From Penicillus capitatus (Eukaryota; Plantae; Chlorophyta): a stretch of DNA of 64,000 bases. Shown here piece by piece: positions 18,755 through 54,456 of this stretch. The stretch spans positions 310,001-374,000 of the forward strand of contig OZ287697.1 in assembly GCA_965649825.1 (NCBI GenBank), given 5' to 3'. Each line of letters starts with the position of its first letter. Position 1 is the stretch's first letter. A program made the translations under genes and the position numbers. The notes under the pieces are model-generated. The model was not told where the DNA came from, searched no databases, and saw nothing but the letters and a program-made list of their open reading frames with translations.

Positions 18755-18785
18755 AAACATAAGCCCAAAAACGACATCGGCTCAG

Positions 18786-30822: not shown

Positions 30823-31534
30823 ATGTCTTCGACGGTGCTTCTCACGGTCGTCCTTCTCGTCGCCATCAGCATCGGTGCGTATGTTCGCCTGTAAAGCGAA
30901 AGATTCGAGGATTTTGCTGCAGTCGATGCAGCGCCTTGTGAGACGGCGTTGTGTAACAGCGTTTCCGCGGGACAGTCCAGCCCTCTTCGTAACGCCGCCA
31001 ACGCCAATCTCTGCTCGTGCACCTGTGGCGGTAACGGCGAGCGTCTGGTCCATCTGGCCGCACGATCTGCGTGCAAATCCTGCATTGAGACACTGATTGA
31101 TGATAACGGCTGTTCGGCGAACGCCCGAGACAGCAACGAGGCCAGGCCATTGCATGTCTCCGCTGCACAGTGCAATGGACAGATCACCACGGTTACCTGA
31201 CTCCTATCTGATCAACTCACTGTATTAACGCGATCATTGCAGGCTCTGTTGGATCGTGGGGCAAATGTCAATGCTAAAGATAATCAGGGGAATGCGCCTG
31301 TCTGTGCTGCGGTGCAGGGTGGATCGACGACCTGTGGGGATGTCGTGGCGGATCTTATCGGACGTGGGGCATCTCCATGTACGAGATGCAGTGGAAATGT
31401 GCTGCTCTATGAGGCAGCTGGTCTATCAAGTGTGAGAGACGTAAGTACATCATGCAATGCTATTCGTTCGCAACGGTGGTCTTGGATGGAAGAGGATCGG
31501 AGCACTTAACGGCGCTCCGGAAGACTGTTTGTAA
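30823..31534 (+). CDS. Secreted Cys-rich ankyrin-repeat protein A1
   Basis: Signal exon plus 3 introns; LVHLAA, RPLHVSAA, GANVNAKDNQGNAPV; 14 Cys in the predicted mature chain. Last acceptor slightly uncertain. Confidence 0.8.
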
Positions 31535-32914
31535 CCGTAGCACGGTTCCACTTGTCAAACCAATTGAACGCAGATGCATCCAAGCTGTCTTCGTTGTCTG
31601 TTCAAACATGCAGTCCTCACCATTCTTATCGTGTATAATAGGCAGACGATAACAAAATACGATCCCTGTTTGACCACACAACGATTTAAGAATCTCATGC
31701 AGTAGTTGATGTTCATTGCAAGAGAATGTCGAAAAGCTGACCCGTTTGACATTGTTACCTGTACACTGAGCGGTATTGCCAGATGATCTGAGCTGATAGA
31801 GGTGGACGCAGAATTGAGGTGAGGTGACCGGTCTGTTCTAGATCCGCCCTCTGTCTAGACACTATGGACATCCGTTGACTGGGACGACTGGATGTGGCAT
31901 CCAGTGATATCGTTCGTCGAAATCTGGAGACGGATTGGACCTTCCCGTGTAAAGGCTCGATGCTAAAGAACAGTAGAGAGGACAGACGTCACTCTTTTCA
32001 ATCTATGCCACTCTCTCACACAATTCTGACCCATCCGATATTGCCGAACAGTTTTTGAACACTACAGCACCTGCCTCATGCAATCGTCGTTGCAACGGTT
32101 TTTTTAGACATTTGAAAAAAGAGGGGATCCATTTCGATCACGTCCGGTTTCGTGCAGATGCGTCTATGTAGATAGATTTCAAGGAGATCGGCTTCGTCTT
32201 AGGATCGATACCCATATCGACATCGCTCTAGGCCATCGAAAGCATCCGGCTTCGGAGGTAGGAATAGAAAACGAGCGACCGGATCGCTCCTAGACATTTT
32301 TTTTCCAACAATGTGCATCTCGACGTGTTCCGCACAAACAAACGCGCTGCGTTTCAGATTCGAAATCGGTAGCCGCTTTCCTTCGAAGAACGCAAACGAT
32401 GAGACGGTCACGGGCAGACGCGGTCACAACTTCCGTCTTGCTTCCAAAGCAGACGACCTCATGGAAACTCGATTTGTAAAAGCACGATCTTTGTAAATTC
32501 GTAAACTAGCTATTATATAGATACTTACGACACGCGGCCCGTTTGCCTCTAGTAAGGCACATAATGCCACATATTGAGGAGATATGGACCCCTTAAGTCG
32601 TTTGAGACCACAAACAGCTGGCACAGACACCACCTGTCCAATTCGCCAAAAAACAGACGGACGCTCCGACTCCAACCGTTACGGGGAAGCTACCCACACG
32701 GCTCGGTTTTCCCTCTGCGTAGCGAGGAACGGTCCAAATGACAACATTCAACGCGGCGGCTTCCCTACTGCCCCCATCACCGCTTCGCAGAAACGATGCC
32801 TCGTAGAATAAAAAGCAGAAACGATCTTTGCGGCAACCCTTTGCACTTGACAGCTACACTTGGGTATCTCCACAGTAGGGTTGGTCTGTTGACAAGGAAG
32901 GGTCTGCCACGGTG

Positions 32915-33642
32915 ATGTCTGCATCGACTATCCTCGCTCTTCTTTCCTTTCTGACAACCGTCGGTGTTGGTACGTACATGCTCTCCAGCGCTTCTGACCA
33001 AACGTTCCTCTACAGTCCACGCAGCTTCCTGCGGAAGAAACATATGTAACAGCGTTTCTGAGGGAAGATCCAACGTCATCAAGGATTCGACGAGAAGCCT
33101 CTGTTCGTGTACCTGCGGCAGTAACGGCCAACGTCTGCTCCACATTGCTGCACGGTCTCCGTGCCTCTCCTGCATTAAAATACTGACCGACAAAGGATGT
33201 CCTATCGACCCCACAGACAACAATGGAAACACGCCAATATTCATAGCCGCCGAAAACTGCAATGTGGAGATCGCGAGGGTTTGTGATTTATTTCTCTCTT
33301 GTCTTTGTATGAAGATGTCGTACGGTAGGCCCTTCTCTCCCGTGGGGCGAATGCAAATGCCGTGAACAATGTCAACGAGACTCCTTTTTGTGTCGTGGCC
33401 CGGGGTGCGTCGAGTACGTGTGTACCAGTTGTGACGGCTCTTGCTGAGGCAAACGCGAATCCTTGTCCTTTCTGCGGTAACGGTGTTTTCAGTGTGCCTT
33501 ATACACTTGCCAATCTGCAAATCGTTCGTGAGGTAAGTAAACCATTAGCTCTCCTTTCTCTTATGTATGGGATGAATTTTAGGAAATTGGGAGGAATGGA
33601 GGAGCTGTCGGTGAAGCGAATCCTGACTGCCCTCCTGTTTAG
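32915..33642 (+). CDS. Secreted Cys-rich ankyrin-repeat protein A2
   Basis: 3 introns at the A1 positions; LLHIAA, GNTPIFIAA, GANANAVNNVNETP; 14 Cys. Confidence 0.8.
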
Positions 33643-35606
33643 TACTGTCGCATCTGTTGTTCAAAGCGAAAAGGGCGAATGAGATATATCCAATGCACAG
33701 ATGTTTTTTTCTACTTCTCAGTGAAGCACAAACACCCACTTCAAGGCGTCATCCACGGCCACTTTTTTGCTATGAGTGCATCATTTGCCTATAGAAACGA
33801 TTCGGTTCATTTAAGGAACCAGATTCAGGAGATCAACGCAAGAATACGATCGGAGAGAAAACACGCGGTTGTGGATTCAAATGGGGTTTGAGAGGGGGGG
33901 ACTCTTTTCTCAATTGTGTAGATGGAGACATCGATGGGACGATGCTCTGTAAACAAACCACAGTGCAGAAAACGGCGATGCACTCGAACAAACAAACAGT
34001 CATCATGTTTCTGATTAAAACGTGTACGGTAAGAAGTGCTGCACACAATCCATTCAGCGCATTCTCGTTCAGATCCCTTTCGGATGGAGATGCCCGAATG
34101 CATTCTTGTACCGCAGAGTATGTCACTCTTTTGGCAAACACTCTCACACATTCGTCCGGAGCGTCAACAAGTCGATTAGAGAATGGCGGCGCTTCTGCGA
34201 TCGGAGCAGCAAGCAACCTTTCCCCACCCACATTTGATGAACCGCATCGTCTGCCTGCTATCACATTTCTCCTGCTGGCCCGAGACCTGGTCGGCATTCA
34301 AACAAGACCTCAACAGGTAGGAATCCATTAGAACAAAAGCTTCTCTGTCGTGCGTCTCTCCACCGTTGACAGGAGTGCCGATGTACCGCCCATCGGATGT
34401 ACGACTTCAGGTAAGGACACTTCCGCCAAACACGCATCGACTGAACACGTTGCCGAACAGCACCAGAAATACAGCGACAGCATTGCCCGCCAGAGTGCCT
34501 TTCGCGCACGGTTGCCGTCAGCGAACGGATAGTTCTTATCTGAAGCTTCTTTAGTAGGTGACAGGACAGCGATTCAGACCATAACGCATGCGATGAACGT
34601 GACGCGACAGCGAGACGTGTCTATCACTCTGCTGGTCCACTGTCTCAACTCCGGTAAGTCTGTCCACTTCGGACGCATAGCCAAAACCTACATTGCTCGA
34701 ACCGTGCCGTCTAAAAAAGACGACGAACACACGTACGCTGCATGTTCACCTCCTATTCTCATGCCACAGAAGTCACATCAAATTGGTGCTGTGATGCGCG
34801 AAGGACGCGTTTGGCACTCAAGAACAAAAACACGTCGCCATAGAAACAAAAGCGACTTCCGTTTTTCACAGAAAGGTAACGTCGGCACCCGCCAACTGAA
34901 ACGATGACCGTCTTCTTTCGCCGGAGGACGGGCAAACGCCTTGTTAGGTCATGATAGAACGGTAAGTCGATAATGGGCCGCGGCATGCATGCGCTCCCGA
35001 GGCAACTCTAAATTCGCGACTCGTCCACTTCTCCAATAGGATCTTCGCTTGTTCGTTTCTTGTCGCGTCCGTCGAGCGACAGACTTGAGACTGCGCAGAC
35101 GGCCGGACCGAGGGCAAATTTCTGACTGTGACGCTGCCCACCATCCTACCAACGACTCCACTCCTTCGCACAAGTCAGCCAAAATTTGGCGAGGCAGACG
35201 TATCCTCCTCTTAAGCCAACAGTACAGTTACATGTTCGCCCGGCAGAAGATAGCGACACTGCGACACTTCTGGCGGAGCAGAAATTTGGAACCCGTAGAC
35301 GGGAATGAAAGGTAATTCGAAAAGAAAGCGCGGCAAAAAACTGCATTGCGCATAGAGTCCGCGTTTAGCGAAAAACTGACAGCACGTGTTTGTGCAGGGC
35401 TGCAGGAAAAGCGGAGGAAAATAGCAAAGTGCGCTGAGGGCAACGCGGCAACGTCTGTGGACATCCGACCTGCCTCGAGCGCAAACCTCCTACGGATGCC
35501 GCCAGCTGTCGCTAGCGCACAACGACGAAACTACGTTTACCCATTATGCCACGAACTTTTCGCGAATTAACAAGACGTGCTGTGGCAGACCGTCGATGCG
35601 CTCGTC

Positions 35607-35755
35607 TGAGGACTTGATTGATCATGTCATCGATGACGCGGACGCGGGCTCTCTTGCTGCTTGCAGCCACAGAAAAAACATGAGGACTTGATTAGTCATC
35701 GTCATCGATGACGCGAACGCGGGCTCTCCTGCTGCTTGCATCCATAGAAAATAAC
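35607..35755. repeat. Two about 74-nt direct repeats, followed by two about 53-nt direct repeats (35762-35858)
   Basis: tgaggacttgatt..gtcatcgatgacgcg.acgcgggctctc at 35607 and 35681; acagaaga..agtgaa.agtagg..tcgtgaagctg at 35762 and 35815. Confidence 0.75.
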
Positions 35756-35902
35756 GTTAGTACAGAAGAACATAGTGAAAAGTAGGTGTCGTGAAGCTGA
35801 GACACGTGTCTAGGACAGAAGATCGCAGTGAAGAGTAGGCATCGTGAAGCTGGAAAACATTTTCATCCCCCGCTAGCTAGATGGCAGCTGCGGTCGCTGG
35901 CC

Positions 35903-35909
35903 TATAAAA
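35903..35909 (+). promoter_or_regulatory. TATA box upstream of A3
   Basis: TATAAAA 89 nt before the ATG, same spacing as in the paralogs. Confidence 0.6.
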
Positions 35910-35991
35910 GCGAAGCGCCTGAGCAAAATCCATTCGAACTCTGACATCTCGTCGAGTAAAGCCGATATTCAGCTTGCGTTCTCTGTCCATC

Positions 35992-36823
35992 ATGTCTCCG
36001 TCTCTGCTCGCCGTTTTCGTTTGCCTTGCGGCTGCATCCAGCGTCGGTACGTATGGTCGATTTACCTGTGTCTGCTGCATGGTGGTGTGTTTGGCGTAGT
36101 TTACGCGGTTCCTTGCCCGGAAGGTGCTTGCAAAAGTGTCGCCATCAGGGACCCAAACACCCTTAAAACATTCTTCGTGGATCCCGTGTTGTGTACTTGC
36201 ACCTGCGACGACGAAGGAAATACTCTTTTCCATGAATCCGTTCCAGCCATATGCACTCAATGTATCGAGTTTCTACTAAACTCCCCCGACGAAGGCGGCA
36301 ACGGCTGCACCGACGTCGACGTTATGGACGACGCAGGAAACACGGCGTTGCATGATGCCGCCGCGCAGTGCATCGATCCGGTGTTGAACGTGAGCCATGA
36401 CGCTGACCTTCCTATTGGGAAAACGTTTTCTCGTAGACTTTGATCGACGCGGGTGCCGACCGCTCAAAGACCAACTTGGCAGGAGAAATCCCTCTCTGCG
36501 TCGTGGGCACGGATAGTCCTCCTAACCCAGGCGAATGTGGCGGCACTGCTGCCGATATCATCGGCATTAATGTCTTTCTTCCTACGACAGAGGAGTGCTT
36601 TTTAGACAGCACAACGTTCGAATTCTGTCCTTGCACTTTGTGCGTGGGCGGCAAGCTACCGTTCGATGTAGCAAAGGAAAATAAGTTGACAGGAGTCGCA
36701 GACGTACCTTCTCCCGCTTTCACCCTTCGCCTTCCTCTAACGCATCCTTGGTCTTAGGTCATCGGTCAGGACTGCGGGTTGCCTGATCTATGCAATGCTG
36801 CTGTGCCTCCATGCACGCCATGA
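35992..36823 (+). CDS. Secreted Cys-rich ankyrin-repeat protein A3
   Basis: 3 introns; GNTLFHES, GNTALHDAA, GADRSK; 18 Cys owing to a C-terminal insertion. Confidence 0.8.
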
Positions 36824-38193
36824 ATGCATCATCTCAGAATGATCGAAGCCAATCAAGCCATGTCAATGTTAGAATGGCGATGAATTTTTTCTTTAGGCAC
36901 ATTTCATGAGTGCCCTTCTCAGCAATCTTCCATTGCTCCCTCTCTCCGTGTTTGTTTTTTTTTCGTGAATGTGGGTCTGTGTTGCTCACATATGCCTCTA
37001 TGGACTTTCTTCTACAATGTTTAAGAAATCCATGAGATCCCAAAACACCGTTTGAGTCCAAACGTTTGCGCCTCGATACACGCAACCCACCAAACACTGT
37101 TCCTCTAAAGCTCATCCCCATCGCTGAAGTAAGTGTAAAATAGCGTATCCATTCGATGGACAGGTCTATCTCCCACGTGCTGCGACACATATCCACTTCA
37201 TCCCTCCGCTGCATCCTTCAAAACGCAATCTGTTGCGCGCACCAGAAGCGCTCGTAGACGTCTGTCGTTTTTCTTTCATGCCCTTGTAAACAGAGTAAGT
37301 ACCTCGCCGGCTGAAATCGGTTTTAGGTAAGTACTGCTGCAGATGTCTGTAGACCTTCCTCGGCTTCTCCACCCAACTAGTCTTTGACTTCGGACGACGT
37401 CGCTGTCTTTAGCCGTTCTTCTGGCTCTTTGCTGGAGGCCGGGCGGACGGACATGGGCCCACTCCGAATGCTAGACAGCATGTGAAATCTCACACGCCGT
37501 TTGCGTTGGGAGCTACTCCTCTGTTTTCATCGTTTGTGTTCCGCTGACGTGTCCTTTTTGTGGTACATCCGTCTCCACTCTGTTCCCTCCCGTCGCTCTG
37601 AGCGATATCCGACTTGGAAGGCGAGACGTTTCCACGTCTTGTCGGCGGCGCAGCGAAGGCCGGCGAATTGTTCGCCGGCTCGTCATGCGACAAGCGAACA
37701 CGGCTTTCGTCTCTCCCTGGACACCCCCATCCGCACGTTCGAACGAACGAACATCCGCGAAGGTTCGGCAGCGGAGGAACGTTTTCGTCGACTTCGGAAT
37801 CCGACCAGCGGCACGGGGACCGCCTCTGGGGATGTTCGGTGTCAGGCCACGTCGCTGTCTGCGATGTGTCTGCGACGACGACGGCGATTTTGTTACAGCT
37901 TCCTTCCAGCTTCATCCCCCTAGAGACCAAGCAATGGAGCCAGCATCATCGCCTGAGACTCCGGATTCCCGGAGTCTCGGCATCTCATTACATTACATTT
38001 GCAAGTTGCACGGACAACGCCCTCACCGTGCCCGATTAATAGAATCTATGGGGAGAAAGCAGAAAAGAGACACGACACTTGTGCTTTGACCTTCAGTAGT
38101 TACGGTCTTTCGAATCGACAGGCCACCGAAAACGCTCCATCGATTCCAGCAGTCGCAACGGGATGACTAGGAGAAGACGCGTGAAAAGGGTGC

Positions 38194-39074
38194 TCATTCG
38201 CACGGAGGGCAGAACTCCTCGCAGGTGCCGTCCCCCGAAGTGATCAGCAGCGAGCTGCCTTGGGACGCCGAACACGGAATGCAACAGGCGTAACCCGGGC
38301 AGCAGGGCGCGTCTTGACCCCACGAATCTGAGAAGGCGTCGAGGAACGCGTTGCACCTCTCACTCTACATCCACGATGAGTTACGATCTGCAGGGATCGA
38401 TCTTGTGAGGGAGGTCACACTTCGCGTCGGCAATCGGCGAGTTCCGATGGAGACGGCGCAGAGGGCTCTGCCCGTCGGCTCGCATCCGAAAAGAGCGAGA
38501 ACTCTCCGGAGGACGCATCGCAGTCGACCGCCGTCCCGTTCCAGATGAACAAGGCTTCGCACTGTCCGCAGCGGGAAGCGTAGCACTGCGCTTCCGGATA
38601 GGCGGGACAGAGGGCACGTCTGCACGGATTCGTGCAGCGAGCGATGTTCGCAGTGCAGTTGCCTACAGGGACAGCCGTCGTCATCTCTGCTGCGAGATCT
38701 GGTGCAGCGCACAGGGACACATGCCGCTGCAGGCCACCTCCGTTCCTGCACACCGAGCGTAGCACGGATTTCCGTAGGTGTTTCCGTCCTCTCCGCAGAC
38801 CAAGCTCGCCCGATTCGTGCACCGACACCCATCTTCGCACGGACACCGAGTCAGGCACGAAAGGTCGACGTCTTCACAGTCGGCGCACACGCCGTCCGAC
38901 GGATCGTTCCCCTCTCCACAGATCTCCCTGTGCCCGATGCACGTGCAGGAATCCGTTTCTACAGCGGAACAGACGTCCATCCATCCCGCGTCTTCCAAGC
39001 TGGAGCGTACGGGCAGCAGCGAGGCGGATGAAAGCGGCAAGGAGCAATGCGGTCGATAGAAGTCGCGTGCCCAT
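38194..39074 (-). CDS. Secreted modular Cys-rich protein with Kazal domain(s)
   Basis: Signal MGTRLLSTALLLAAFIRLAAA; 3 introns; Kazal CRCTNRASLVCGEDGNTYGNPCYARCAG..C; then a C..NPC....CP..P.A.C....CG.C module and a CC-containing tail ending GTCEEFCPPCE*. Confidence 0.75.
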
Positions 39075-39285
39075 TGAACGGAGAGTCTTCATTGGAGTGC
39101 ACGGTTTGTTGAAGGACGCGCGTTGCAGTTTTTCTTGGAACAGTGGCCTTCTGGCTACAAGGAAGAACGCGGTGCGATCTCAGTAGGGAAGTCGACATTT
39201 TGTTTCACGCGAAGTTCGTGAGCATCTGGAAGCTAGATGGCTAGCGGCATGCGTTTCACTTCGTACCGTCCGCGGATCCACGAGG

Positions 39286-39674
39286 ATGGCAACGTACCTG
39301 TTGACAGCGACGCGCCGTCGTCTGCGTCGATCGATGTCGATTGAAAAATCCTCGCTGCGCGTTTAAGGGCGCGTCTGCTGCTGTCCATCGGTGCTCTGTT
39401 TTTAAGCGGCAGTCCGCTCTGCACGAGCTTTACTCTTGACGGTCGGGTCGACAGCGGTGTGCACGTGCCGCCTCTTTCTGTTATGTACAAGAGAGCGAAC
39501 ACGCCAGTCCTCGATGGGATCTGCAAGAGATTCGAGGAAACGAGTTGTAGCGGGGATGGGAGATTCAGAAGGCTAACGGGGCCAGTCATTGGAAACCGCT
39601 TTGAGGATGCGTTCGGTTCCTTTTACAAACGAGATGCAGTTGCAGTTTTTGATCCCAGCTCTAACTGCTACTAG
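39286..39674 (+). CDS. Possible small secreted protein
   Basis: ATG GCA AC plus intron 39294-39367 gives MATARLLLSIGALFLSGSPLCTS.., in frame with ORF 39459..39674. No family recognised. Confidence 0.3.
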
Positions 39675-41744: not shown

Positions 41745-41751
41745 TATTTAA
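41745..41751 (+). promoter_or_regulatory. TATTTAA TATA variant upstream of A4 (also 43959-43965 for A5 and 46239-46245 for A6)
   Basis: Same heptamer 101-109 nt before three paralogous ATGs, each followed by a ..ccg.tgcgga motif. Confidence 0.6.
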
Positions 41752-41847
41752 ACCATTGCTCCGCTGCGGAAATCCGTCGCGCATTTCTATACTCCTACCA
41801 GTGGCCTTTCGCCGAAGTTTTGGGTTTTATCTGCAACTCAGGATAAA

Positions 41848-42609
41848 ATGTCGCGCGCCTTATCAATCGTCGTTGCTCTGCTGGTTGCTCTGAGTTCGAC
41901 ATCCGAAGTCGTTGCTAGCAAAATTTCTGCGTCGTGTCCAGAGGAGTGGTGCAACGCGGCAGAATCAAGAGACGACAGCGTTATTCGAGCGGCGATTCAA
42001 AACGGGCAGACCGATATGTGCTACTGCTATTGCGAACCGTACCCCAACGGGAATAAGCTTCTGCATGTGACCGCGTGCTCAGAAGCCGTCGCGTTCGCGG
42101 ACTTGATGATTTCGAAGCCGCCAAACTGTTACGTTGATACTTGGGACTCCAACGGCAACACTCCTTTGCACGACGCGGCCGAATGCTGCAACACACCGAT
42201 GGCATACGTACGTCCTAGTGTCGCAGCGTTTGGCATCATCGATTTTGCGTAACCGTAGGTATTTTTGTCGGCTGGAGACGACCCTTTGATCGCAAACAGA
42301 GCTGACCCAGAGAGTGAGAACTGGGATGGCGAGACGCCGATGTGCGTCGCCGCGCTTCAGGACGACCCGGACTGCGCCGGCATTGTGAATCATCTGCTCG
42401 AATTTGGTGCAGATATTTGCACCAAATGTCCCGTTAAGGGCGTTAAAGGCGGCAAACTCCCATACGACGTTGCCGTCAACAAAATCGTCAAAGACGTAAG
42501 TGCATTTCGGTTCGAGTGACACAATCACTGCGTTTCCTAATTGGTGTAGATTATTGAACAGAATGGTGGTCGGACTATGGAAGACGGTGGCATTTGCCCA
42601 GATTACTAG
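41848..42609 (+). CDS. Secreted Cys-rich ankyrin-repeat protein A4
   Basis: 2 introns (no signal-peptide intron); LLHVTAC, GNTPLHDAAECC, FGADIC; 14 Cys. Confidence 0.85.
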
Positions 42610-42877
42610 TTGACGAAAACGGTGCCGATTCATCCATTATCATGCATCAACGCACAGTTTTAAACGAATCACGAGAGCCAGAAACACATACACATATTCA
42701 TTGTTCCTCGTTTTATGTCTTTTGACAATTACTAGGCGCTACAAAGGCGCAATGGGATGAACCAGCATGGATTGTCTACGAAACCGAACTAACAGTGTGT
42801 TGTCATGTTGTTTGCTTGCCAAAACCTGCTGCTCTCACTCGCTCCCTTCTACAGAACAAGACTCCGAAGGCTCGAGA

Positions 42878-43215
42878 ATGATCCCAAGAGCGAGGACGCC
42901 GTGTTGCCTGCTGTATTCTATCGAAAAGATGGCACCGGATATAAACGTCAAATCGCTCCGTCCAGTCAGTCCGTGTGGTACATTCGCGGATGTGACCTGC
43001 GTCCACGAGACAGCTCAGCGTCAGAGATTCGCCGAAGGTCTCTCGCCACTCCAAGCAGCAACCCAGAAATGGCTGTCTTGCATCGAAGACGACGCCGCTG
43101 ATCTGCTCGGCGTAAAGAGATGACGGTTTCGCTTTGTCGACTGGCGTCGGGCTGATATCCGGCACAGGATACACCCATTTGGAGATTCGCCTGTGGCTAT
43201 TTTAAGTTTGCTCCG
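42878..43215. repeat. Duplicated intergenic segment downstream of A4; second copy at about 45150-45480 downstream of A5
   Basis: Core 42922-43008 vs 45196-45282 differs at 1 of 87 nt; flanks are more diverged. Confidence 0.8.
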
Positions 43216-44067
43216 CCCTGTTTAGCTGAACAAGTGGCAAAACTGGATTATTGTTCCCAAGTAAGTGACTGTATTACCTTCGAGGGCACAGTGAATGTTT
43301 GCAATTAGACCCGGGTGGCTACCATCTCGACTTCCGCGTCCTGTAGCGGTCAACGCTTGTCCTTCTTGGGCTCTACGTCGACAAAAGCAAGTCGCTCGTC
43401 GGAGTGCGTGAGCTTCCCGAAGAAAAATTCCCATCTCAAAAAAATCCCATCTCATGGCCTGCCAGCGAAAACAACCTCCTTACAGGTAAGTCAAAGTCGC
43501 GGTTGCACTTTTGACGAAATTCCGCAAATAGAAACCCGCACGACGAACCATTATTCTTAGTACAGTAACATGGAAGGCCTCCCATTTGATAGGCCAGTGG
43601 AGAATGCGTAAATGGTATGCACATAAGCAAATAACGCATGCATCAACCATCATGTTTTCGTACATTCCCAGACAGACCTAAAAACGGTTGTTCAGAAACG
43701 AGCTGCCCTTACCGACAACGAACGAGAACCCCAAACTCTGCATTGTCTCCTAAGGAACCGTTCTTTTCAATAACAACCTCCTATCCAAGAAGCAAACTGT
43801 GCCACACGACGATACGATTGACGTGACCTTTGAACGCCGACCGCTCTTCGCCACAAGTATTGTGAGGTGGCACCGAGGTGGCCTGAACTCGTGTGGAGAA
43901 TGGAAGATCAGACGGTTGGTAGTCTGAACTCGACTGTGAAGTCCATATCCTCCATCACTATTTAACCGACTGGGCCGGGTGCGGACAACGAAGTCGACCG
44001 CTCATTTTGATTTCTAGTCTGTCTGCCTTGTCGAGTCTCTCCGTTCGGCCACCGACTGAAGCATACG

Positions 44068-44809
44068 ATGTCTCGCGCTTTACTGATTTTTGCGCTGCTC
44101 TCGGTGGCGTTGCTAAAGGAGGCGGTTGCCGGGTGGCCACCGGTTTGTCCAGAGAAGTGGTGTAAAGCTGCCGAAAAACGCGACGATGCTGTGATTCGCA
44201 AAGCTATACAAAACAGAGAAGACCAAGCGTGCTACTGCGCATGCAACCCGATGTTTCACCAGAAGAGACTGCTGCACTTGACGGCGTGTGCAGAGTCTGT
44301 GACCTTCGCGGATTTGATGATTTCTAAAGAGCCCAACTGCTACGTTGACGTCAGAGACCGCTACGGACATACACCTCTACACGATGCAGCTGAATGCTGC
44401 AATACGCCAATGGCATATGTAAGTCTGCCGACTTTATTGAATTTCGTTTCCTACAGCGGCATTGTTAGGTGTTCTTGTCTGCTGGTGACGATTCCACAAG
44501 TTTGAACAGCGCCGATCCCGAGAAGAGGAACTGGAATGACGAGACGCCGCTATGTGTGGCGGCGCTTCAGGACAACCCGGACTGCGCCGGCATTGTGAAT
44601 CACCTACTTGAATTTGGTGCAGACATCTGCACCAAATGCCCCGTTAAAGGCGTTAAAGGCGGCAGACTCCCATACGACGTTGCCGTCAACAAAATCGTTA
44701 AAGATGTAAGTGGATTTCTCTTTGAGGAGAAGCAGATGTGAATTGAGGAATGGTGTAGATTATTGAGCAAAATGATGGTCGACTTAAAAAACATGGTGGC
44801 AAATGCTGA
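44068..44809 (+). CDS. Secreted Cys-rich ankyrin-repeat protein A5
   Basis: 2 introns; GHTPLHDAAECC; 14 Cys; closest paralog of A4. Confidence 0.85.
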
Positions 44810-46339
44810 AACGACTGATTGACGAAACTAAGGAGAACAATATCATCATGCAGTGACAGTTATACTCGACCACACAACAAAGACAAAACAGACAACACAA
44901 CACATAACTATCCATTGTGTGTTCCCCACCTTCATTTTTACTTGTTGCGAGCGCTTCCAAAGCGCATTAGAATCGACTGACGTGGTATTGAAAGATGTCT
45001 AACATCGGATGATTTGTTATGTTGCGAGCTTGCGAGATTCTTCTTCTTCTTCGTCGCCAGGATCATCTGGCGGCTCGAACGCGACTCGTGATCGTCTCTG
45101 TCACCGTCTCTCTCGCTCGCTTCTACATAATGAGACCTCTGGGGAACGAAAATGATTCCAAGAGGAAGGACGCCGTGTTGCTTGTGTTATTCTTTCGAAA
45201 AGATGGCACCGGATATAGACGTCAAATCGCTCCGTCCAGTCAGTCCGTGTGGTACATTCGCGGATGTGACCTGCGTCCACGACGCCGTTTAACACCAGAG
45301 ATTCGCCGAAGGTCTCTCGCCACTCGAAGCAACAACTAAGTCATCACTGGCTCTCTTGCTTCATAGACGACGCCGCTGCTGTGCTCGGCGTAGAGAGATG
45401 ACGGTTTCGCTTTGTCGACTGTCGTCGGCTGCTATCCGGCTCAGAACACGTCCATTCGGAGATTCGCCTTCGGCTATTCTCTCCCTTAGTTTCGGTCTGT
45501 GTAGCTGAACAGTCGAAGCGTTTTGAGTCTTGCACCTCTGTGCTTGTGCCTTTCTTGAAATTCCGTACATTACTTGGAGTACGCACACACTCCGTTCGTT
45601 CGTTGCAGTCGCCTGCAGCGTACCGCGTCGGAGCGCTCCACTCTCTGAGCAGTTCGACTGTTGCCACCGACGCTCGTTCCACATCCCAGTCATTGAAATA
45701 GCAGAGAAACGTTGGCCCTTGCAATGTCGACGTTCAGCGCTGGTAACAGCCTCGTAGGGAACTGCCTCGCAACACGGCGTCGTCTCGGCGTCTTGTTCTC
45801 TGAAGAGAACTGCATCCTCAAGCAAAAGAGGGAGATGTTCCCATGCCCTTTTGAGTTCCGTGTCGGAATGGAAGTCGTATTGGACGCCCTATGTCTTTGT
45901 ACGAATACTGAATGATAAAGCTGCGTCGGTAATACTTTCTGCCGTCGTCCACCTCACAAAGAGGACAAATCACGACAGCCTCTTCTTGAGACGATGTCAA
46001 GCAACTGGCCGTCAGCCGTCACACGACACGCAAGTGAAGAGCCGATTCCTTTCTGCCATGTTTTTACACGTGGTCGATGCAGGATAGAGTCAACGGTTGA
46101 TGTGACTTTCTAATATCGTCCATCCAGTCTAAGACGGACGCTGAGGTGGCACAGAGAAAGGATGAAGTTCCCACAGCGGTGACCGATAAACAAGGACCGC
46201 AGTGCGAACTGAACCGTGAAGAGACTAACCACCAATAGTATTTAAGGAACTGCTCCGGTGCGGAGATTCATTCAACATTTCGCCCGGTCTTCTTTTTCCT
46301 GTGTCGAGTGTTTACGTTTCAATATCCACCAGAATCAAA

Positions 46340-47108
46340 ATGTTGCGTTCCTATTTGCTCTTGGTCGCTTTATTGGCATTGACGAGTTCCAAGGCAGCCG
46401 CTTATCCGTATCCGCCTCAATGTGAGCCTGCCTGGTGCACTGCCGCCAAAAAGAAAGACGAATCGGTCATTCGCGAGGCAATTCAGAACGGCAACAGCAA
46501 CAGCAAGATTTGCTCCTGTATTTGTGAACCGCCGGAGGATGAATGGAAGAGACTTCTTCACGTGACGGCATGTTCGGAAGCCGTGGCCTTTGCAGACCTG
46601 ATGATAACGAATCCACCCGACTGCTGGGTTGATATCTATGATGTCAATGGCAACACGCCTCTGCACGAAGCGGCTGGATGCTGTAACACGCCGATGGCAT
46701 ACGTACGTTACGTGCTCATGCGTTTATTGTCGGAATTTGGCGCTTTCTAGGTGTTTTTGTCGGCGGGAGACGACCCTTTGAGCTCAAACAAACCTGCCCC
46801 TTCGAGCTCAAACAAAGCTGACCCAGAGCGTGAGAACTGGGATGACGAGACGCCGATGTGTGTCGCCGCTCGTCAAAAGAATCCGAACTGTGCCGGCATT
46901 GTGAAGCATCTGGTCGAGTTCGGAGCTGACGTCTGCACGCCATGCCCGCCTGACCCCAAGTACCCATACATTCCAGTTTATCCATACGACGTCGCGGTGA
47001 AAGTGGGGAACAAAATAGTTGCCGACGTAAGCTCCTGATTCTATTAACGTCCGCGCAAAATGTTATTTGCTACAGACCATTGAGCAACTCGGCGGCAATG
47101 TTTGTTGA
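46340..47108 (+). CDS. Secreted Cys-rich ankyrin-repeat protein A6
   Basis: 2 introns; GNTPLHEAAGCC; 14 Cys; small in-frame loop duplication SSNKPAPSSSNKAD. Confidence 0.85.
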
Positions 47109-47725
47109 GAATTGAAGATTGAAGCGAGAAGGCTTTGCCGATTCTCGCCTAAGACGCCGCATTCGGCGCAAAGACCATTTCCACCACAGCTATCCTTTCG
47201 TCTCTTTCACTCGCGTCTATACTTTGTCAAAACGCTTTTTTATTGCGCTGTCACAAAGCGCTTGGGGATACTGATGAGATTGGCAAACGTGTGTGGGTAT
47301 GCTATGCATGTAATGAAACGAATCTAACACAAAAAGAATCTCTCCCGACCGTAGCCGATAAGCAGACGCACGCATCGACGACAGCGTCGCCTGTGACGCA
47401 TTCCATTCCCCACAACGCTGGGCGAAATGACGAGCTGTTACTTAGCGAGCAACGGCGACGGTAACGTCGTTTCGTTCAGGAGAGGATGGGCTGCGTGTCC
47501 TGTCGTCTAGATACAGACGTCAGCTATCATGCATCTCGTCACGGATGATGAATTGTCTGCGATTTGTGGCCAGCGGTCGTTCGCATCTCGCGTCATCCGA
47601 ATCCGCTATCCGGCCTCGCATTTTCAACGATAAGTCTTCCCGCTCCCCACGGGCAACGATTACGAAAATTTTGCATACCGGTCAGCGCGGAGTCTGCCTC
47701 ATACACGCCGTAAACGCACCCGAGA

Positions 47726-48501
47726 ATGTCGGTTACCGTGTTTCTGTTTTTTGTTCTTCTTATTGCTGACATCGGAGAAGGTAAACGCTATTTTGCGGTG
47801 CGCGCACTGACGGTGTGCATGTTCAGTCGTTTCTCCCTCACCCAAGAAAGCACCATCATTTTCGACCACCAAATGCCCTTCCGAGCTCTGCAAAGCTGTC
47901 AGAAAAAGAGATGAGAGTGTTGTACGGGAGTATATACACAGTGGATACCCCTATCTCTGCAGCTGCAGCTGCGACAGACGTGGAAACAAGCTTCTGCATA
48001 TGACAGCGCGAACAGAATCCATTGTTTTTGCCCATTTGATGCTAGAAGACCCGCCTGGATGCGAAATCGACGTACAAGATAAGAAGAGGAACTCACCTCT
48101 TCACAAAGCTGCAGAAGTGTGCAACGGTCCCATGACCAACGTCCGTTATCCTATCGCTCAATACTCACCTTTACGTTCTCCTTGCTGTGTAGTTGTTCCT
48201 GGACAAGAATGGAACACTCGCGTCGCTACGTAATCGATCGAAACTGACCCCCCTTTGTTTAGCAGCTCAGCGTAACAATGCAGACTGTGGAGGCGTCGTG
48301 AAGGATTTAGTGGGTAAAGGAGCAAATATCTGCCAGAAGTGCAAAGGAAAGCTGCCGTATGATCTCGCTGTGCATAAAGTGACAAGAGATGTGCGTATCG
48401 CAGCGCTCTATCGATATCGCTCATCCCTCTGTGCTGCGGCATTGCTGTAGATCTTCGAGCAACTCGGAGGCCGGAGTGTTGAAGATGGCGGCAATTGTTG
48501 A
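47726..48501 (+). CDS. Secreted Cys-rich ankyrin-repeat protein A7
   Basis: 3 introns; GNKLLHMTA, NSPLHKAA, GANIC; 12 Cys. Confidence 0.8.
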
Positions 48502-51090
48502 GTGATCACGGCGGTCCGGACAACTGGCCCGACACCAAGGGGTATCCGATGATTGTTGCGATTTGTGTCTGCTCGTTTACTATTGTTGTCGTGTTGCAAT
48601 CCTTCGTCCGACCCTTATCCACGCACACAATTCTGTGTGTGACGTGGGTTACCGGAGGTATCCTCTGTTTTTTCTCTGTAAACACCGTGTAGACGTCAAT
48701 CGATGCATTCATTGTGTTTCTGACAGACTTGCGCAACACATTCAATCGCTATTCGTTACTGTGTACGGGTTTGGGATTTTAACAAAATGTTGAACTCTCG
48801 CCGTCTGTGTGAAGGGTAGTGTAAGTAAGCACTGAACTGCAAACGCAGAGCTAAAAATGCTGTCTGTGTGCAAGATCGACTGTAAGCTGGATAACATTTA
48901 AGAGGGGGGGCATTGGATATCGTAAGATCGATAAGGAGGACATTAACGATTGATTGGGGGGCAGTCATGGGAGGAGCCGTTGATGATCAGATAAATGCAT
49001 TTCTATTGTAAGATGCATGCTTAGAGGGAAGAGGCGTCGTCTCAGACGGATCTCCTTCGAAGCGATGTTGATGTTGTAGAATGCCTCGGTCGGGTGCTTC
49101 GCCGCGACGGTGAGGATTCGTCGTTGCGATCAACCGTCGACGATCGTCCCCGCGGCTATCGCAACGATGCGACGGAACTCTGAAGGTGCCGTCGCCGAGA
49201 CGCCCGCGTCGCAGTGGCACAGCACGTCTTTTCTTTCGTTCCTTCGTCGTCTATCGATCGCGCACGAGCGTTGTTGTCCTCACGTCCTAGTACAACTTAG
49301 CTTTCGGCTGTGTATAACTAACAATCTACATGGTGATGTGACCTTCGCTCAGGATCAAGCCTGTTGATGCATTGTGAGGCTATTGGCTATCAGTTCAGCG
49401 AGTAGGTCGTGTGTTAACGCATTGGGAGATGGCTCTTCAATCCATCTTTGTATTTACCTTCAGGGAGATGCACTAATGCTGTTCGTTGAGAGGAGTCTCC
49501 CCCTAGACGAGATGATTTTAGCTATGTATTCACTCGATAAAGACATAAATGCCAGCTTTGGTGTCAGTCTGGACGCTGGTCACGGATAACGTGGCTCGAT
49601 CGGCACGTAAGTAAGTGTGGGTGATTTATCCTGCGGTATCGACGCACCTTGAAAGCAGATTTGACTGAAGCATGCAGAAACGGCACTAGACAGACATGAG
49701 AGATAGAGCATCCGCTGTTACTTACCACGAGCATCTCCTAAAAGGCTCAGTCTATGACCCGTGGGTCACGCATAAGACGTTGATTGATTGGCCTAGACTA
49801 AAGTCGAACGAAATCTTCAGTGGGGAATCCAGTCATAGACTCCTTCTCTATTACGCATCTATTAAATGGCACAGCACAAATGGTTGGATCAGACTTCGTC
49901 TAATGTGGCATTGCTGAACGGTGCTGTGCACCGACATTCCTCATCATGGCTGTTGGCTGTGGTGAAGTTTCGGGTGTCTTGTCGACAGCACGTTCAGCTC
50001 AACGTACCAATCTCGTCGAAGAATACAGAGAATGCATCCCGTTAACTATGGATGCTGGGTTAACCAGTTCAAGCATGATTGATTTGGGATTTTGTCATTC
50101 TAATAGATTTTACGCATCGACGGAAAAATGATCCCGTAGAATCATGCACGTCTCGGATAGCGATCTTACACCACAGGATCCGAAGCAAATCAAGATACGT
50201 TACACCTGAACCACTCGATTGTTCGGTATCGCATTCGCATATTCGACGCAAACGATGCAGTTTTTTCATCGTCGCAGAAAGCGCCCGTGTCGTTACAAAG
50301 AGTACCACTAGCCGTAGGCAAACTCGCTGAACATCTGCTGTCGTTTTATCGTCCGTCCGCGCAAAACCGTGGCCGGTGGATGATGCCCATGGTGGATGCT
50401 TACAGATGGGCTAGCCGATTTGAGCAGCAGAGAACGAGCTGCTTCGTGGACGGACGGTCGAGACGGTGAGAAATTTGCCAGTCGACGTTGTGCATCTTGC
50501 TGTCGACAGCTCGCGCGTTCGTTCCGAATGCAAACACGTGTCCACAAGTTGACTGTACCTTCCTTTCGGCAGGAACGACAGTGGGAATTGGACAGCGAAC
50601 AATTCGACAGGATATTACCGAGCTCTGAATGTCTAGCTCTGTCGCGATGTCGCCGCAGCAAAAGGAATCCAAACACGAGCTACGGTCGATGCAGCTGCCG
50701 TCTGCTCTGTCGACGTTGACATGCAGCACGTTGAAAGAGAGATGAACGGGGAGTGCTTTTTCGTAGGCCGAATATGACAAGAGATGAGGAGGTGGGATAT
50801 GAGTCTCTAGCTCAGTGGGGGGTTGATCATGATTGTATACAGGTAGGTAGGTAGGTCATTGGTCGAAACGGTCGGTTGTGTTTGACCACGATGTCTTGGA
50901 TGGTGTGTTCGTGCTAGGGGCAGTTTCCCATTAGCTGCCAACAATAAGTGTTCTATAATAGCTCCCAGGAAGTTGGAAAAGAAGAAATAGCCAATCAGCT
51001 GCCTCGAAAATACGAGAACCAATGGTTTTGTCCATACATGGAAGCTGACAGTACTGCTGCCATCTGCATGGCACCTTCTTGACCACCGGC

Positions 51091-51097
51091 TATAAAA
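51091..51097 (+). promoter_or_regulatory. TATA box upstream of A8 (also 53452-53458 for A9)
   Basis: TATAAAA 101 nt (A8) and 84 nt (A9) before the ATG. Confidence 0.6.
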
Positions 51098-51191
51098 GTC
51101 GCGTCGTGGTGGACGGAGCATTGGACCATATTCGCGTTTGGAGTTTTTGTTGTCTCCTGACGAAACTCTCTCTTCAGTTGTGTTTTGTCAG

Positions 51192-52533
51192 ATGGTTTCA
51201 TCGGGATCCATATCGACGGCATTTGTCTTTATCCTGCTGTCGGTGGGAAGTGAGGTCTTTCGTGCGTAATCGCTGTGCTGAAGTGAGTGCACTAGGCAAT
51301 GCTGCGTCGACGCGGCGTTTGAAACAAGAGGTGTCGCCCTCGCCGCCAACGGCGTCAGCCGGCGTCAGTGTATCCTTCGTGGAGTCAAGCCCTACACCGC
51401 CGAGTATCAGCATCTCGCTAAGTGCAGTAACCTCGCCTGTAGATCCGCCTGCCGACACCACTCCGCCACCGGCAAGCCCGGCGGACCCCGTGACATCTCC
51501 AGCGGACCCGCCTGCCGACGCAACGCCGCCGCCGGCAAGCCCGGCGGACCCCGTGACATCTCCAGCGGACCCGCCTGCCGACGCAACGCCGCCACCGGCA
51601 AGCCCGGCGGACCCCGTGACATCTCCAGCGGACCCGCCTGCCGACGCAACGCCGCCACCGGCAAGCCCGGCGGACCCCGTGACATCTCCAGCGGACCCGC
51701 CTGCCGACGCAACGCCGCCACCGGCAAGCCCGGCGGACCCCGTGACATCTCCAGCGGACCCGCCTGCCGACGCAACGCCGCCACCTGCAAGCCCGGAGGA
51801 CCCCGTGACATCTCCAGCGGACCCGCCTGCCGACGCAACGCCGCCACCTGCAAGCCCGGAGGACCCCGTGACATCTCCAGCGGACCCCGTTACCTCGCCC
51901 CTAATGTGCCGCCCAGAACTCTGCTCAGCAGCACAGCGTCGTGACGAATCAGTCGTTCGAAGTGCTATTGAAGATGGAGAGGCCGGTCTTTGCGATTGCG
52001 TTTGCGACCCTACTACTGGAGACACACTTCTTCATGTGAGCGCATGCTCTGAGGCCGTGGCATTCGCTATACTGTTACTCGAACCTCCGCCGATGTGTGA
52101 CGCGGATGTCATGGACGCCGATGGGGGTTCTCCTCTCCACGAAGCAGCAGGCTGCTGTAATGCACCCATGGCATTCGTAAGTTCAACCATCCCTCTTTGC
52201 CTGTCACATCAACTGCTTTTCAGAACTTTCTGCGCTTTGGAGCCGACACCGAAAAGCTCAATGCCGCCGGGATGACGCCTCTGTGCGTTGCCGCCATGCA
52301 AAACTCAGAGACTTGCGCCCCAGTCGTCGTGCAACTGGTCAGCGACTTCGGTGCCGATGTCTGCTCGCCATGTCCAACAGACACTGGCCCAATGTTGCCT
52401 GTCGATGTCGCCGTCAACCCTGTCGTCAAGAATGTAAGACATCGATTGCTGTCCCGTCTAAAGCTTGATCTGCATGGCATAGATTATCATCCAAAACGGC
52501 GGAAACCCAGTCGATCTTGGAGGCACGTGTTAG
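51192..52533 (+). CDS. Secreted Cys-rich ankyrin-repeat protein A8 with a Pro/Ala/Asp/Thr/Ser-rich stalk
   Basis: Signal exon, 3 introns, 7 x 21-aa repeat, then the same 14-Cys ankyrin module (GDTLLHVSAC, GGSPLHEAAGCC, GMTPLC). Confidence 0.85.
51442..51882 (+). repeat. 7 x 63-nt near-perfect coding tandem repeat (DPPADATPPPASPADPVTSPA)
   Basis: Exactly 441 nt; units differ at only a few positions. Confidence 0.95.
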
Positions 52534-53535
52534 ATCAACCCCCTCGATGCAAAGCTCCAGTAATGAGAAGTAGTCCTTCAAGATGCGTCTATTCCACAAC
52601 CGGAACAAGTCGAATGTCGTATCATTTTCAGCCAGATGTTCTTTTTTCTTTCGGATTTATGCGCTCAGATGAAGCGTTTAGACTCCACGAGATCGTCAAG
52701 TTTGCCGGGAAACGATTCGGTGTAACGTTTTCGTGCGATTGATGGAACTTACCTCTCTCCTCGCGCGTTATCATCCGCCTGTCACCGACAATGCTGAAAA
52801 AGAAGGTCATCTATGCGGCCTCGATAGATATTGTCTCGAATGACCGTTGTTCGATCGCTGCCCGATTCGCTGTTCATCGGTGACGTGACGTGCGCGGCAT
52901 TGAGTGCAGAGCCTTATTCCTAATCACAATCTACATCTATGACCGTCGTACTGCCAAAGGATGCATCGAAATGCTTGAAATGCATTCAGCGCCGCCCTTA
53001 CGCTTTCGTGCGTGTGTAAATGAATGAAGGTCGAAGAAACGCGACGCTGAAAGTTCTATAAACACACCAACGCAGCATTCCATCAATTACAAAGACATGC
53101 TCACTAGCTGCGAACCCTCTTGCTGTCTCTTTTAAGCTCACAAGGGAGCGAGGTCTGTCATTTACGTCTTTTCCAATACAGCCTAGAGCGCTGACAATGA
53201 ACCCTTCAACCCATCTTGCTGCAACAGTCCAAAGACTCCGTCAAACTTGGCACCGTCGCTGAAAGCATTCCGCGTCGTTTCCAGACAGACGACGAACTTC
53301 ACCGTCGATTTCCCGCTGGTTCACGAACAGCGTCGTATTCCATTGGATGGGGTCTGCCACGCAAGCCACCCTTGGACGCGTTCTCATTGGAACTCGATGA
53401 CGACAAGACGCATCGACCAGCGAAATTCAAGACGAACTTGACCGTCTCGACTATAAAAGCGCCATTCCTTTCTCTCTCGCCGTCTTTGCGGCTTCTCCTT
53501 TTCTCATCTCACGAATCTGCTCTTCTCGACGCGCC

Positions 53536-54456
53536 ATGAAGTCATCCTTGGTCTTCGTCCTGCTCGTCTGTCTCTTCGCCAGTCTGACAGGCAGACACTG
53601 CTACACGGATTTACCGCTTTGCTGACGGACTTTGTGTCTTGGCTCAGTTTCCGACGCGCAAGGCGTTGCGACACAGGTATCTACTGCCTTGCGTTCCGTG
53701 ACGGGATGCTCGACGACGGTTCTCTTCGTGACTAGGCGTGCAGTCAAGCGTGCGAAGCTGCCCGAAAGAAGGACCCCGAAGTCATTCGGGCACTGCTCGC
53801 TAGTGGCGCTGACCTGTGTCACTGCCGCTGTACCTGCAACGGCGAGACGCCGCTTCACCTCTCCGCGGCGACAGAGTGCACTTTGTGCGCCGAAGTGCGA
53901 TACCAACAGCGCTGTCGTGGCAAAACAACGCATAACGCGATATGGCTGTAGCTTTTGACCCAGGAGCCGTCGAGTTGCTATGTGGACCGCCTGAACTTTG
54001 ATGGGGACTCTGGACTGCTGATGGCGGCGAATATCTGCCAAAGTCCAATGACCAACGTACGCGCCGCGCCTAACCGACGGTGATGTGACCTTTGCGTATG
54101 TGCCGACTGTTTAGACTTACCTGAACGCCGGAGCGAATCCCAACGCAGTGAACTACTACGGCAAGACGGCACTCTGTTTGGCAGCTGCTCTCGAAAGCGA
54201 CCGCTGCGGTGGTGTTATTAACGTACAGACAGCATTCCTTCATACTTCTCGTGCTCAATCTTTGATCCATCTCTACAGGACTTGGTCACCGGAGGAGCAG
54301 ACATCTGCCAGAGATGCAACGGCCAGACGCCGTTCGAAATTGCCACGTATCCGAACAACAAGAATGTAAGACGCATAGACTCCTGTGGACGGTGGCACCA
54401 AGCACGTCTTGTTTTCCTAGATTATCATCCAGAATGGCGGAGATAACTGTCCTTGA
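53536..54456 (+). CDS. Secreted Cys-rich ankyrin-repeat protein A9
   Basis: Almost invisible in the ORF track; six introns (the first probably GC-AG, 53591-53647); GETPLHLSAA, GANPNAVNYYGKTALC; 15 Cys. Confidence 0.75.

Follow-up and report, generated by a model that had tools for sequence, protein, structure and literature searches.

A tandem array of nine paralogous genes, termed A1 to A9, lies on the forward strand of contig OZ287697.1 from Penicillus capitatus (assembly GCA_965649825.1), within positions 310,001 to 374,000. This whole 64-kb stretch is referred to as the window, and positions are counted from its first nucleotide unless another contig is named. The same sequence is contained in a 1.46-Mb contig (41x coverage) of ENA analysis ERZ25074695. 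The array extends from 30823 (ATG of A1) to 54456 (stop codon of A9), exactly the interval to which the original prediction for this stretch had assigned nine same-strand paralogs. All nine genes encode ankyrin-repeat proteins with a hydrophobic, signal-peptide-shaped N-terminus and a fixed framework of cysteines. The best reading of these data, which we consider probable, is that they represent a lineage-specific family of secreted ankyrin binders, braced by disulfides and capped with cysteines.

Short broken open reading frames (ORFs), with homologous peptide blocks that switch frame about 50 nucleotides apart, are the local cue to spliced genes. Gene models were made by hand, each GT..AG pair around every frame break being tried. 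All 27 introns of the resulting models are of GT-AG type, measure 46-66 nucleotides (mean 52) and bring a stop or a frameshift when retained. Most donors read GTAAGT or GTACGT, and acceptors are TAG (18), CAG (8) and AAG (1). This region of the window is eukaryotic. Two phase-0 introns are common to all nine genes, one after the block ..CCNTPMAY and one before the short tail exon IIEQNGG..C. These two had been recognised in the original prediction; its list was incomplete, since A1-A3 and A7-A9 have a phase-1 intron directly 3' of the sequence for the hydrophobic signal-peptide core, and A9 contains three introns beyond those that the others carry. Introns 1 and 2 of A9 are modelled with the least confidence. 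No tenth copy was found in the 64-kb window by tblastn with all nine proteins. Public ORF calls for the family are exon-sized fragments without annotation (ORF P0003, for example, is exon 1 of A5), and the genes are indeed hidden by such calls, as had been predicted. Exons and product sizes are listed in Table 1.

Ankyrin identity was approached by several routes. Pfam profiles Ank_2 and/or Ank match all nine proteins above their gathering scores, e.g. Ank_2 in A1 (E 4e-16), Ank_4 (3.5e-14) and Ank_2 (7e-14) in A2, and Ank in A9 (1e-11). A3 passes narrowly, with Ank at 21.3 bits against a cut-off of 21.1 and Ank_2 slightly below its cut-off. Most members have GNTPLH or GETPLH in repeat 3, and the histidine of repeat 2 is invariant. 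The Pfam scan of the nine proteins gave no match to Sel1 or leucine-rich repeat (LRR) profiles. In several members, the C-x4-C..CxCxC region weakly resembles Sha_B_N (E 0.05-0.09), but this match scores 14 bits where 24 are required and was set aside as sub-threshold; another sub-threshold match is HTH_upst_double_PIN in A7 (E 0.22). When PDB sequences were searched with the family profile, all matches were ankyrin proteins.

Two divergent members, A4 and A1 (31% identical), were modelled with AlphaFold2 from an input alignment of eight paralogs. Both models are confident, with a predicted local distance difference test score of 92.4 and a predicted template-modelling (TM) score of 0.88 for A4, and 94.3 and 0.89 for A1. 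Their common architecture comprises four helix pairs, then a small beta hairpin and another, shorter helix pair, and the chain ends in a fold-back tail. In a Foldseek search with the A4 model, the solved structures that rank highest are designed ankyrin repeat proteins (DARPins) and further engineered ankyrins (probability 1.00, target TM-scores 0.77-0.83). Since Pfam, the PDB profile search, AlphaFold2 and Foldseek agree, membership of A1-A9 among ankyrin-repeat proteins is established.

The nine proteins are 27-74% identical in pairwise comparison, and 12 cysteines are invariant among them, even where identity is about 30%. At the N-terminal cap, these form a C-x3/4-C motif, with which the first helix opens, and a CxCxC motif in the first loop (the finger). 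One invariant cysteine is located in the loop connecting repeats 2 and 3. Another belongs to repeat 3, where it takes the place of the consensus glycine in the turn between the helices. In repeat 4, one occupies the position of the TPLH histidine and one the start of helix 2. The C-terminal cap consists of CxxC in the loop after repeat 4 and a cysteine a few residues from the C-terminus. Altogether, cysteine accounts for 7-9% of the mature proteins, and of the 15 family members (the nine proteins and six relatives modelled from other contigs), 13 have an even number of cysteines when mature.

Besides the invariant set, there is a variable pair, formed by the cysteine of TAC in repeat 2 and the first cysteine of CCN in repeat 3. 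Both are present in A4-A6 and A8 and both are missing in A1-A3, A7 and A9, i.e. they are gained or lost together. These residues occupy positions 13 and 14 of neighbouring repeats in DARPin numbering, which would be adjacent on the concave face. A1-A3 and A9 have a CxxC in place of the pair, and A7 has neither. In the A1 model this CxxC is situated exactly at the N-terminus of helix 2, a geometry that permits a disulfide in thioredoxin-like proteins. In DSSP analysis of the A4 and A1 models, residue 3, the neighbour of C4, is joined to the CxCxC strand by a beta bridge, and the terminal cysteine is bridged near the CxxC hairpin. The modelled cysteine pattern fits intramolecular disulfides that would cap both ends and tie the repeats together; we infer disulfide formation and pairing from the sequences.

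All 15 family members begin with a hydrophobic core of 11-20 residues, whose best 9-residue Kyte-Doolittle window scores 2.5-3.7. This call is a hydrophobicity heuristic, not SignalP. The core is followed by AxA-like small-residue sites such as VDA-AP, VHA-AS, AVA-GW, ADA-LP and ATA-YP (the hyphen marks the presumed cleavage point). Elsewhere in the proteins, A8 has a best 19-residue hydrophobic window of 1.86, and in the other 14 members the value is 0.7-1.5. Neither KDEL/HDEL nor a hydrophobic C-terminal tail occurs in the family proteins examined, and N-glycosylation sequons are almost absent. Mature proteins are mostly about 165-200 amino acids long and acidic (isoelectric point 4-5), A7 being the sole basic member (8.8). 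It is thus likely that A1-A9 enter the secretory pathway. Plastid targeting was considered for sites followed by aromatic residues or leucine (A-YPYP, A-GWPP, A-LPWP) and was rejected because the cysteine-rich domain begins within about 6 residues, too few to accommodate a transit peptide. A glycosylphosphatidylinositol (GPI) anchor, prenylation or retention in the endoplasmic reticulum (ER) by way of the C-terminal cysteine was rejected as well: hydrophobic tail and KDEL/HDEL are absent, and the CaaX-like aliphatic pattern is missing in most members.

A syntenic array of a second species is located on a 4.08-Mb contig (L002; 180x, ENA analysis ERZ26696514). Orthologs of A3 (partial) and A4-A8 are found there, followed by the beginning of A9; order and strand agree with those of the window, and no change in copy number was seen between the two arrays. 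Both arrays include a cysteine-rich gene that separates A3 from A4 and is read in the opposite direction. When exon coordinates from the window were projected on L002, frames remained open across the junctions of A4, A5 and A7; projections of A6 and A8 are disturbed by indels and by the repeat block of A8. Exons are 77-90% identical between the two contigs, most introns 60-81%. L003 and L004, contigs of lower coverage from the sample that yielded the window, each contain one A6-like gene with the same two introns.

Ratios of nonsynonymous to synonymous divergence (dN/dS) were estimated by the Nei-Gojobori method between window genes and their L002 orthologs. Four of the five orthologs tested (A4-A7) are under strong to moderate purifying selection (Table 1). 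A3, whose ortholog is 53% identical, is a fast-evolving outlier with dS similar to that of the other members. It also has an additional cysteine-bearing loop and a three-cysteine tail; the number of cysteines equals that of its ortholog in the comparable stretch, one extra cysteine having moved elsewhere. Orthologs diverge mainly at the fingers, the tail and the N-cap helix, with 0.16-0.28 differences per site in each pair compared; in the helices of repeats 2-4, the value is only 0-0.08.

A8 differs in layout. Its signal peptide is followed by a region of about 200 amino acids rich in proline, threonine, alanine and aspartate, and then by the ankyrin domain. The Pro/Thr-rich region appears to be a mucin- or extensin-like stalk. 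The window version contains tandem 21-amino-acid units (PPADATPPPASPADPVTSPAD). Since the repeat block of the L002 ortholog (17426-19114) is much longer and of other composition, the length of the stalk evolves fast, and the ankyrin domain is kept. The stalk thus varies between species as mucin and extensin stalks do, which suggests association of A8 with the cell surface or matrix.

We wondered how widely the family is distributed. A collection of 5.8 billion proteins was searched with two profiles, one of the full family and one from which the generic GNTPLH repeat had been removed. Both retrieved ORF fragments on the same few ENA metagenome contigs, to which family-level matches are confined in these word-indexed searches, where only candidates sharing words with the query are scored. 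All matches from named organisms in this collection are generic ankyrin proteins with E 1e-15 or weaker. When 1.84 billion representative proteins were searched exhaustively with a profile, 341,906 matches were obtained but no family-specific information; the top ranks are occupied by giant multi-ankyrin proteins of 1,000-6,500 amino acids with 10-48 matched stretches. Scanning JGI metagenome contigs for the patterns LH[DE]AA[EG]CC and NTPMA[YF]VF revealed no family member, and the single locus with a pattern match (L005) proved on reading to encode an ordinary ankyrin protein. A literature search yielded no account of an ankyrin family that is extracellular and rich in disulfides. As far as accessible data show, the family thus appears to be lineage-specific.

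Taken together, the array most probably encodes small ankyrin proteins that enter the secretory pathway. Each would form a solenoid of four helix pairs and a shorter fifth one, in which six conserved disulfides and a variable seventh probably act as cross-links. The C-x3/4-C motif and the CxCxC finger would constitute the N-terminal cap; the CxxC loop and the terminal cysteine on the fold-back tail would constitute its C-terminal counterpart. Inter-repeat cysteines take the place of consensus residues, namely the turn glycine of repeat 3 and the TPLH histidine of repeat 4. Such proteins would most likely serve as binding modules resistant to proteases and denaturation, at work either extracellularly or within the lumen of a secretory compartment. 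Each paralog would probably recognise its own conserved partner by means of its finger face and caps, and in A8 the module would be carried on a Pro/Thr-rich stalk, probably glycosylated, which suggests attachment to surface or matrix. Stable one-to-one orthology together with low dN/dS argues that most members have fixed partners rather than form a rapidly diversifying repertoire. Signal cleavage, secretion, binding function and partners are all deduced here from sequence. More tentatively, and with considerable reserve, we propose that A1-A9 would be the first natural class of extracellular, disulfide-cross-linked and Cys-capped ankyrin solenoids, hyperstable secreted binders with a target of their own each, and the ankyrin counterpart of extracellular LRR proteins with LRRNT/LRRCT caps.

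Several observations weigh against this interpretation. The mature cysteine count is odd in A9 and in the A6 ortholog, and CxCxC and CxxC are also typical metal ligands. Moreover, since loops outpace helices in most proteins, the variability of the fingers argues only weakly for a binding face. As to the original prediction, its observations are confirmed and became sharper than first stated. This concerns genuine ankyrin repeats in a fold fairly described as DARPin-like (structure prediction, which it had called for, gave a confident ankyrin fold for A4 and A1), signal-peptide-shaped N-termini (the hydrophobicity heuristic shows no further membrane-like segment), the fixed cysteine scaffold, now resolved into 12 invariant cysteines and the variable pair, and a family with no named or described match in protein, JGI and literature searches. 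Its interpretation is partly supported; the unsupported part is discussed below.

Among other explanations, the same molecules might be effectors secreted to act on another organism, be it host, prey, symbiont or competitor. We regard this as rather unlikely. In its favour, proteins with a signal peptide and few ankyrin repeats are enriched in the secretomes of the plasmodiophorids Plasmodiophora brassicae and Spongospora subterranea and treated as effector candidates; plasmodiophorid genomes likewise have introns of about 60 nucleotides and secreted protease inhibitors (PMC4471660, PMC7317818). Small cysteine-rich apoplastic effectors of fungi and oomycetes provide a further model. The array genes are also small, cysteine-rich, tandemly duplicated and lineage-specific, they enclose a further cysteine-rich gene of secreted type on the opposite strand, and the fast evolution of A3 makes this gene the best candidate for an antagonistic interaction. 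However, strong to moderate purifying selection on four of five orthologs and their stable one-to-one relationship speak against effectors in general. Nor were plasmodiophorid ankyrin candidates reported to be Cys-rich: the three candidates stand outside the four proteins listed as such, and they are thought to be active inside host cells (PMC7317818). No conserved cysteine scaffold is described for them, and word-indexed searches of the 5.8-billion-protein collection revealed no sequence relation of A1-A9 to Plasmodiophora or Spongospora proteins or to named effectors. Retention in an internal compartment (ER, Golgi, vacuole, extrusome, or a scale- or wall-forming vesicle), whose oxidising lumen would explain the cysteines, is unlikely. 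It would draw on the same evidence of secretory entry, on the acidity of most mature proteins and on the stalk-like repeat of A8. KDEL/HDEL or another recognisable retention signal is lacking, as is a transmembrane or GPI-type tail, and N-glycosylation sequons are almost nil; none of this is decisive.

The original prediction had favoured an expanded, diversified repertoire of extracellular binders, possibly for recognition of microbes, self/non-self or wounds. Nine divergent paralogs built on one scaffold, with variation concentrated in fingers, caps and tail and with a dN/dS of 0.71 in A3, would suit a fast-diversifying repertoire. Yet order and one-to-one orthology of A3-A9 are kept at dS of about 0.5, dN/dS is 0.10-0.27 in A4-A7, copy number is equal in the two arrays and L003 and L004 have only single A6-like genes; fast diversification is therefore still less probable than internal retention. 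The main chemical rival to disulfides is binding of zinc or iron-sulfur-like clusters by the conserved cysteines, in which case the hydrophobic N-terminus might be an anchor. Metal binding is unlikely, and this combined scheme has a low probability. CxCxC and CxxC are common in metal sites and one histidine is invariant, but the latter belongs to repeat 2, where it is simply the histidine of the usual ankyrin TPLH motif. Disulfides are the better fit to cysteines that are even in number and come or go in pairs, the cores have the length of signal peptides (11-20 residues) and are followed by small-residue sites, and AlphaFold2 gives a confident plain ankyrin stack without ligands. Finally, fragmentary, unannotated ORF calls might indicate decayed pseudogenes or chance ORFs that resemble ankyrin repeats. 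This reading is effectively refuted because all nine frames are intact after splicing at conserved splice sites, exons are better conserved than introns in the second species and dN/dS is well under 1; predicted folds are, moreover, confident.

Further features were noted in and around the array (Table 1). An element of about 320 nucleotides is found between array units, 0.9-1.2 kb upstream of A5 and A6. The two copies are 84-90% identical, above the level of coding exons, and share one 50-nucleotide stretch at 100%. Similar elements (70-73%) precede A5/A6-like genes on three other contigs (L002 11236-11512 and 9059-9375; L003 8901-9164; L004 8865-9127). Mismatches by codon position (11/14/19) show no clear periodicity, and no Rfam match was obtained for the element, which could be a shared regulatory element, a noncoding RNA or a small unannotated gene. 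An imperfect tandem repeat lies about 250 nucleotides upstream of the start of A3. The minus-strand cysteine-rich gene between A3 and A4 (2192-2853, also minus, in L002) has a signal-peptide-like start (MKTLRSMGTRLLSTALLLAAF). A Kazal-like motif seen in it by eye (LVCGEDGNTYGNPCYARC) was not retained, as Pfam reports no family. Between this gene and the A4 ortholog, L002 contains a 365-amino-acid ORF (5692-6789, minus strand) with a weak, sub-threshold zf-RVT match. In the shorter counterpart interval of the window (39.1-41.8 kb), no ORF of comparable size is listed, no homology search having been made there; a retroelement insertion in the second species is possible. Directly upstream of the A6-like genes on L003 (4930-8664) and L004 (4063-8628) are three large intron-free ORFs (about 370-650 amino acids) without Pfam match.

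Upstream of the array and apart from it, a tandem duplication includes three FAD_binding_4 oxidase-like ORFs and two related multi-pass membrane ORFs without Pfam match. It is followed by an ORF for a probable secreted repeat protein, which has a signal-peptide-like start (MNRFPCILLLALLIAAVPG) and many repeats of KSPEPS/KQSPEPS type; its Pfam result is limited to a weak sub-threshold PARP-like match. Another ORF encodes two HA (helicase-associated, PF03457) domains (E 7e-20), a type of domain that is abundant in stramenopile algae and might hint at taxonomy. A gene for phosphoenolpyruvate (PEP) carboxylase is located near the array, and the two are also linked on the 4.08-Mb contig and on a 64.9-kb contig. 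Its nearest named match is from the green alga Enallax costatus (EukProt; 53% identical); identity is 42-49% to enzymes of land plants, bacteria and the vampyrellid Leptophrys, and 73-95% to metagenomic contigs. No rRNA, tRNA or other Rfam matches were found within the 64-kb window.

Table 1. Array genes and other features of the window (aa, amino acids; dN/dS and dS refer to comparison with the L002 ortholog)
Feature	Position	Strand	Product or content	Exons	dN/dS	dS
A1	30823-31534	+	186 aa, 14 Cys	30823-30874, 30923-31191, 31243-31440, 31493-31534		
A2	32915-33642	+	193 aa, 14 Cys	32915-32969, 33016-33278, 33329-33532, 33583-33642		
A3	35992-36823	+	225 aa, 19 Cys (mature 18)	35992-36046, 36100-36389, 36437-36703, 36758-36823	0.71 (partial; L002 1-560)	0.57
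A4	41848-42609	+	218 aa, 14 Cys	41848-42207, 42259-42495, 42550-42609	0.24	0.56
A5	44068-44809	+	212 aa, 14 Cys	44068-44418, 44469-44705, 44759-44809	0.10	0.59
A6	46340-47108	+	223 aa, 14 Cys	46340-46702, 46751-47026, 47076-47108	0.27	0.77
A7	47726-48501	+	205 aa, 12 Cys	47726-47780, 47827-48140, 48193-48390, 48451-48501	0.11	0.42
A8	51192-52533	+	399 aa, 14 Cys	51192-51249, 51296-52176, 52224-52433, 52483-52533		
Tandem repeat within A8	51445-51887	+	63-nucleotide unit, 7 copies, 98% matches			
A9	53536-54456	+	189 aa, 16 Cys (mature 15)	53536-53581, 53648-53676, 53736-53894, 53952-54056, 54115-54222, 54279-54365, 54421-54456		
Tandem repeat upstream of A3	35607-35751		75-nucleotide unit, 1.9 copies, 90% matches			
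Element upstream of A5	42833-43150		about 320 nucleotides			
Element upstream of A6	45107-45428		about 320 nucleotides			
Cysteine-rich gene	~38400-39100	-	signal-peptide-like start			
Tandem duplication	2016-18617					
Oxidase-like ORF	4249-5763		FAD_binding_4			
Oxidase-like ORF	8112-8654		FAD_binding_4			
Oxidase-like ORF	13560-14630		FAD_binding_4			
Membrane ORF	2016-2981		multi-pass			
Membrane ORF	17973-18617		multi-pass			
Repeat-protein ORF	19736-20677	+	probable secreted protein			
PEP carboxylase gene	22288 to ~25000	-	includes ORF 22288-23160 (-)			
HA-domain ORF	25796-26632	+	two HA domains			

Ankyrin repeats are among the commonest binding scaffolds and are regarded as intracellular and disulfide-free. 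Almost all natural ankyrin proteins are cytosolic, nuclear or associated with the cytosolic side of membranes; they contain few cysteines and lack a signal peptide. A1-A9 share with them, and with DARPins, the common 33-residue helix-turn-helix-loop repeat and the stacked solenoid; DARPins, with 4-5 repeats, are also of similar size. Unlike canonical ankyrins, A1-A9 would carry a signal peptide, their cysteine content reaches 7-9%, both caps are cysteine-rich, and the turn glycine of repeat 3 and the TPLH histidine of repeat 4 are replaced by cysteines. Engineered DARPins are valued partly for lacking cysteine. If the proposed reading is true, the family would offer templates for hyperstable binders, and the array would mark a secretome island. 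The array also illustrates how prokaryote-style ORF calling on eukaryotic metagenomic contigs hides whole families: all public traces of its genes are exon fragments without annotation.

The combination of short introns with probably secreted ankyrin and cysteine-rich proteins is reminiscent of plasmodiophorids, to which no sequence link was found. Latrotoxins, which are venom proteins, exemplify ankyrin repeats that function extracellularly, and their ankyrin region is matched by the family profile. They are, however, pore-forming proteins of more than 1000 amino acids with about 20 repeats, and their likeness to A1-A9 is generic to ankyrins. The Helicobacter cysteine-rich proteins (Hcp family) are secreted alpha-helical repeat proteins of Sel1-like/TPR-like (tetratricopeptide-like) type with one disulfide per repeat. 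Hcp proteins are paralogous, secreted and disulfide-braced, as proposed for A1-A9. This is analogy, not homology: Hcp proteins are bacterial and built of Sel1/TPR-like repeats, whereas A1-A9 are eukaryotic, spliced ankyrin genes with cysteines in caps and inter-repeat links.

The same design logic of a Cys-capped extracellular solenoid is known from LRR proteins. Lamprey variable lymphocyte receptors, Slit and Toll ectodomains have disulfide caps (LRRNT and LRRCT) and a variable ligand face; repeat and fold are different, so that the parallel is an analogy only. What appears to be new in A1-A9 is that ankyrin repeats, by means of a conserved framework of cysteines, are adapted to the secretory pathway; the fold itself is known. 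If true, this would illustrate the way in which a repeat fold of the cytosol is adapted to extracellular life, by a route of added cysteine caps and inter-repeat links akin to that of extracellular LRR proteins.

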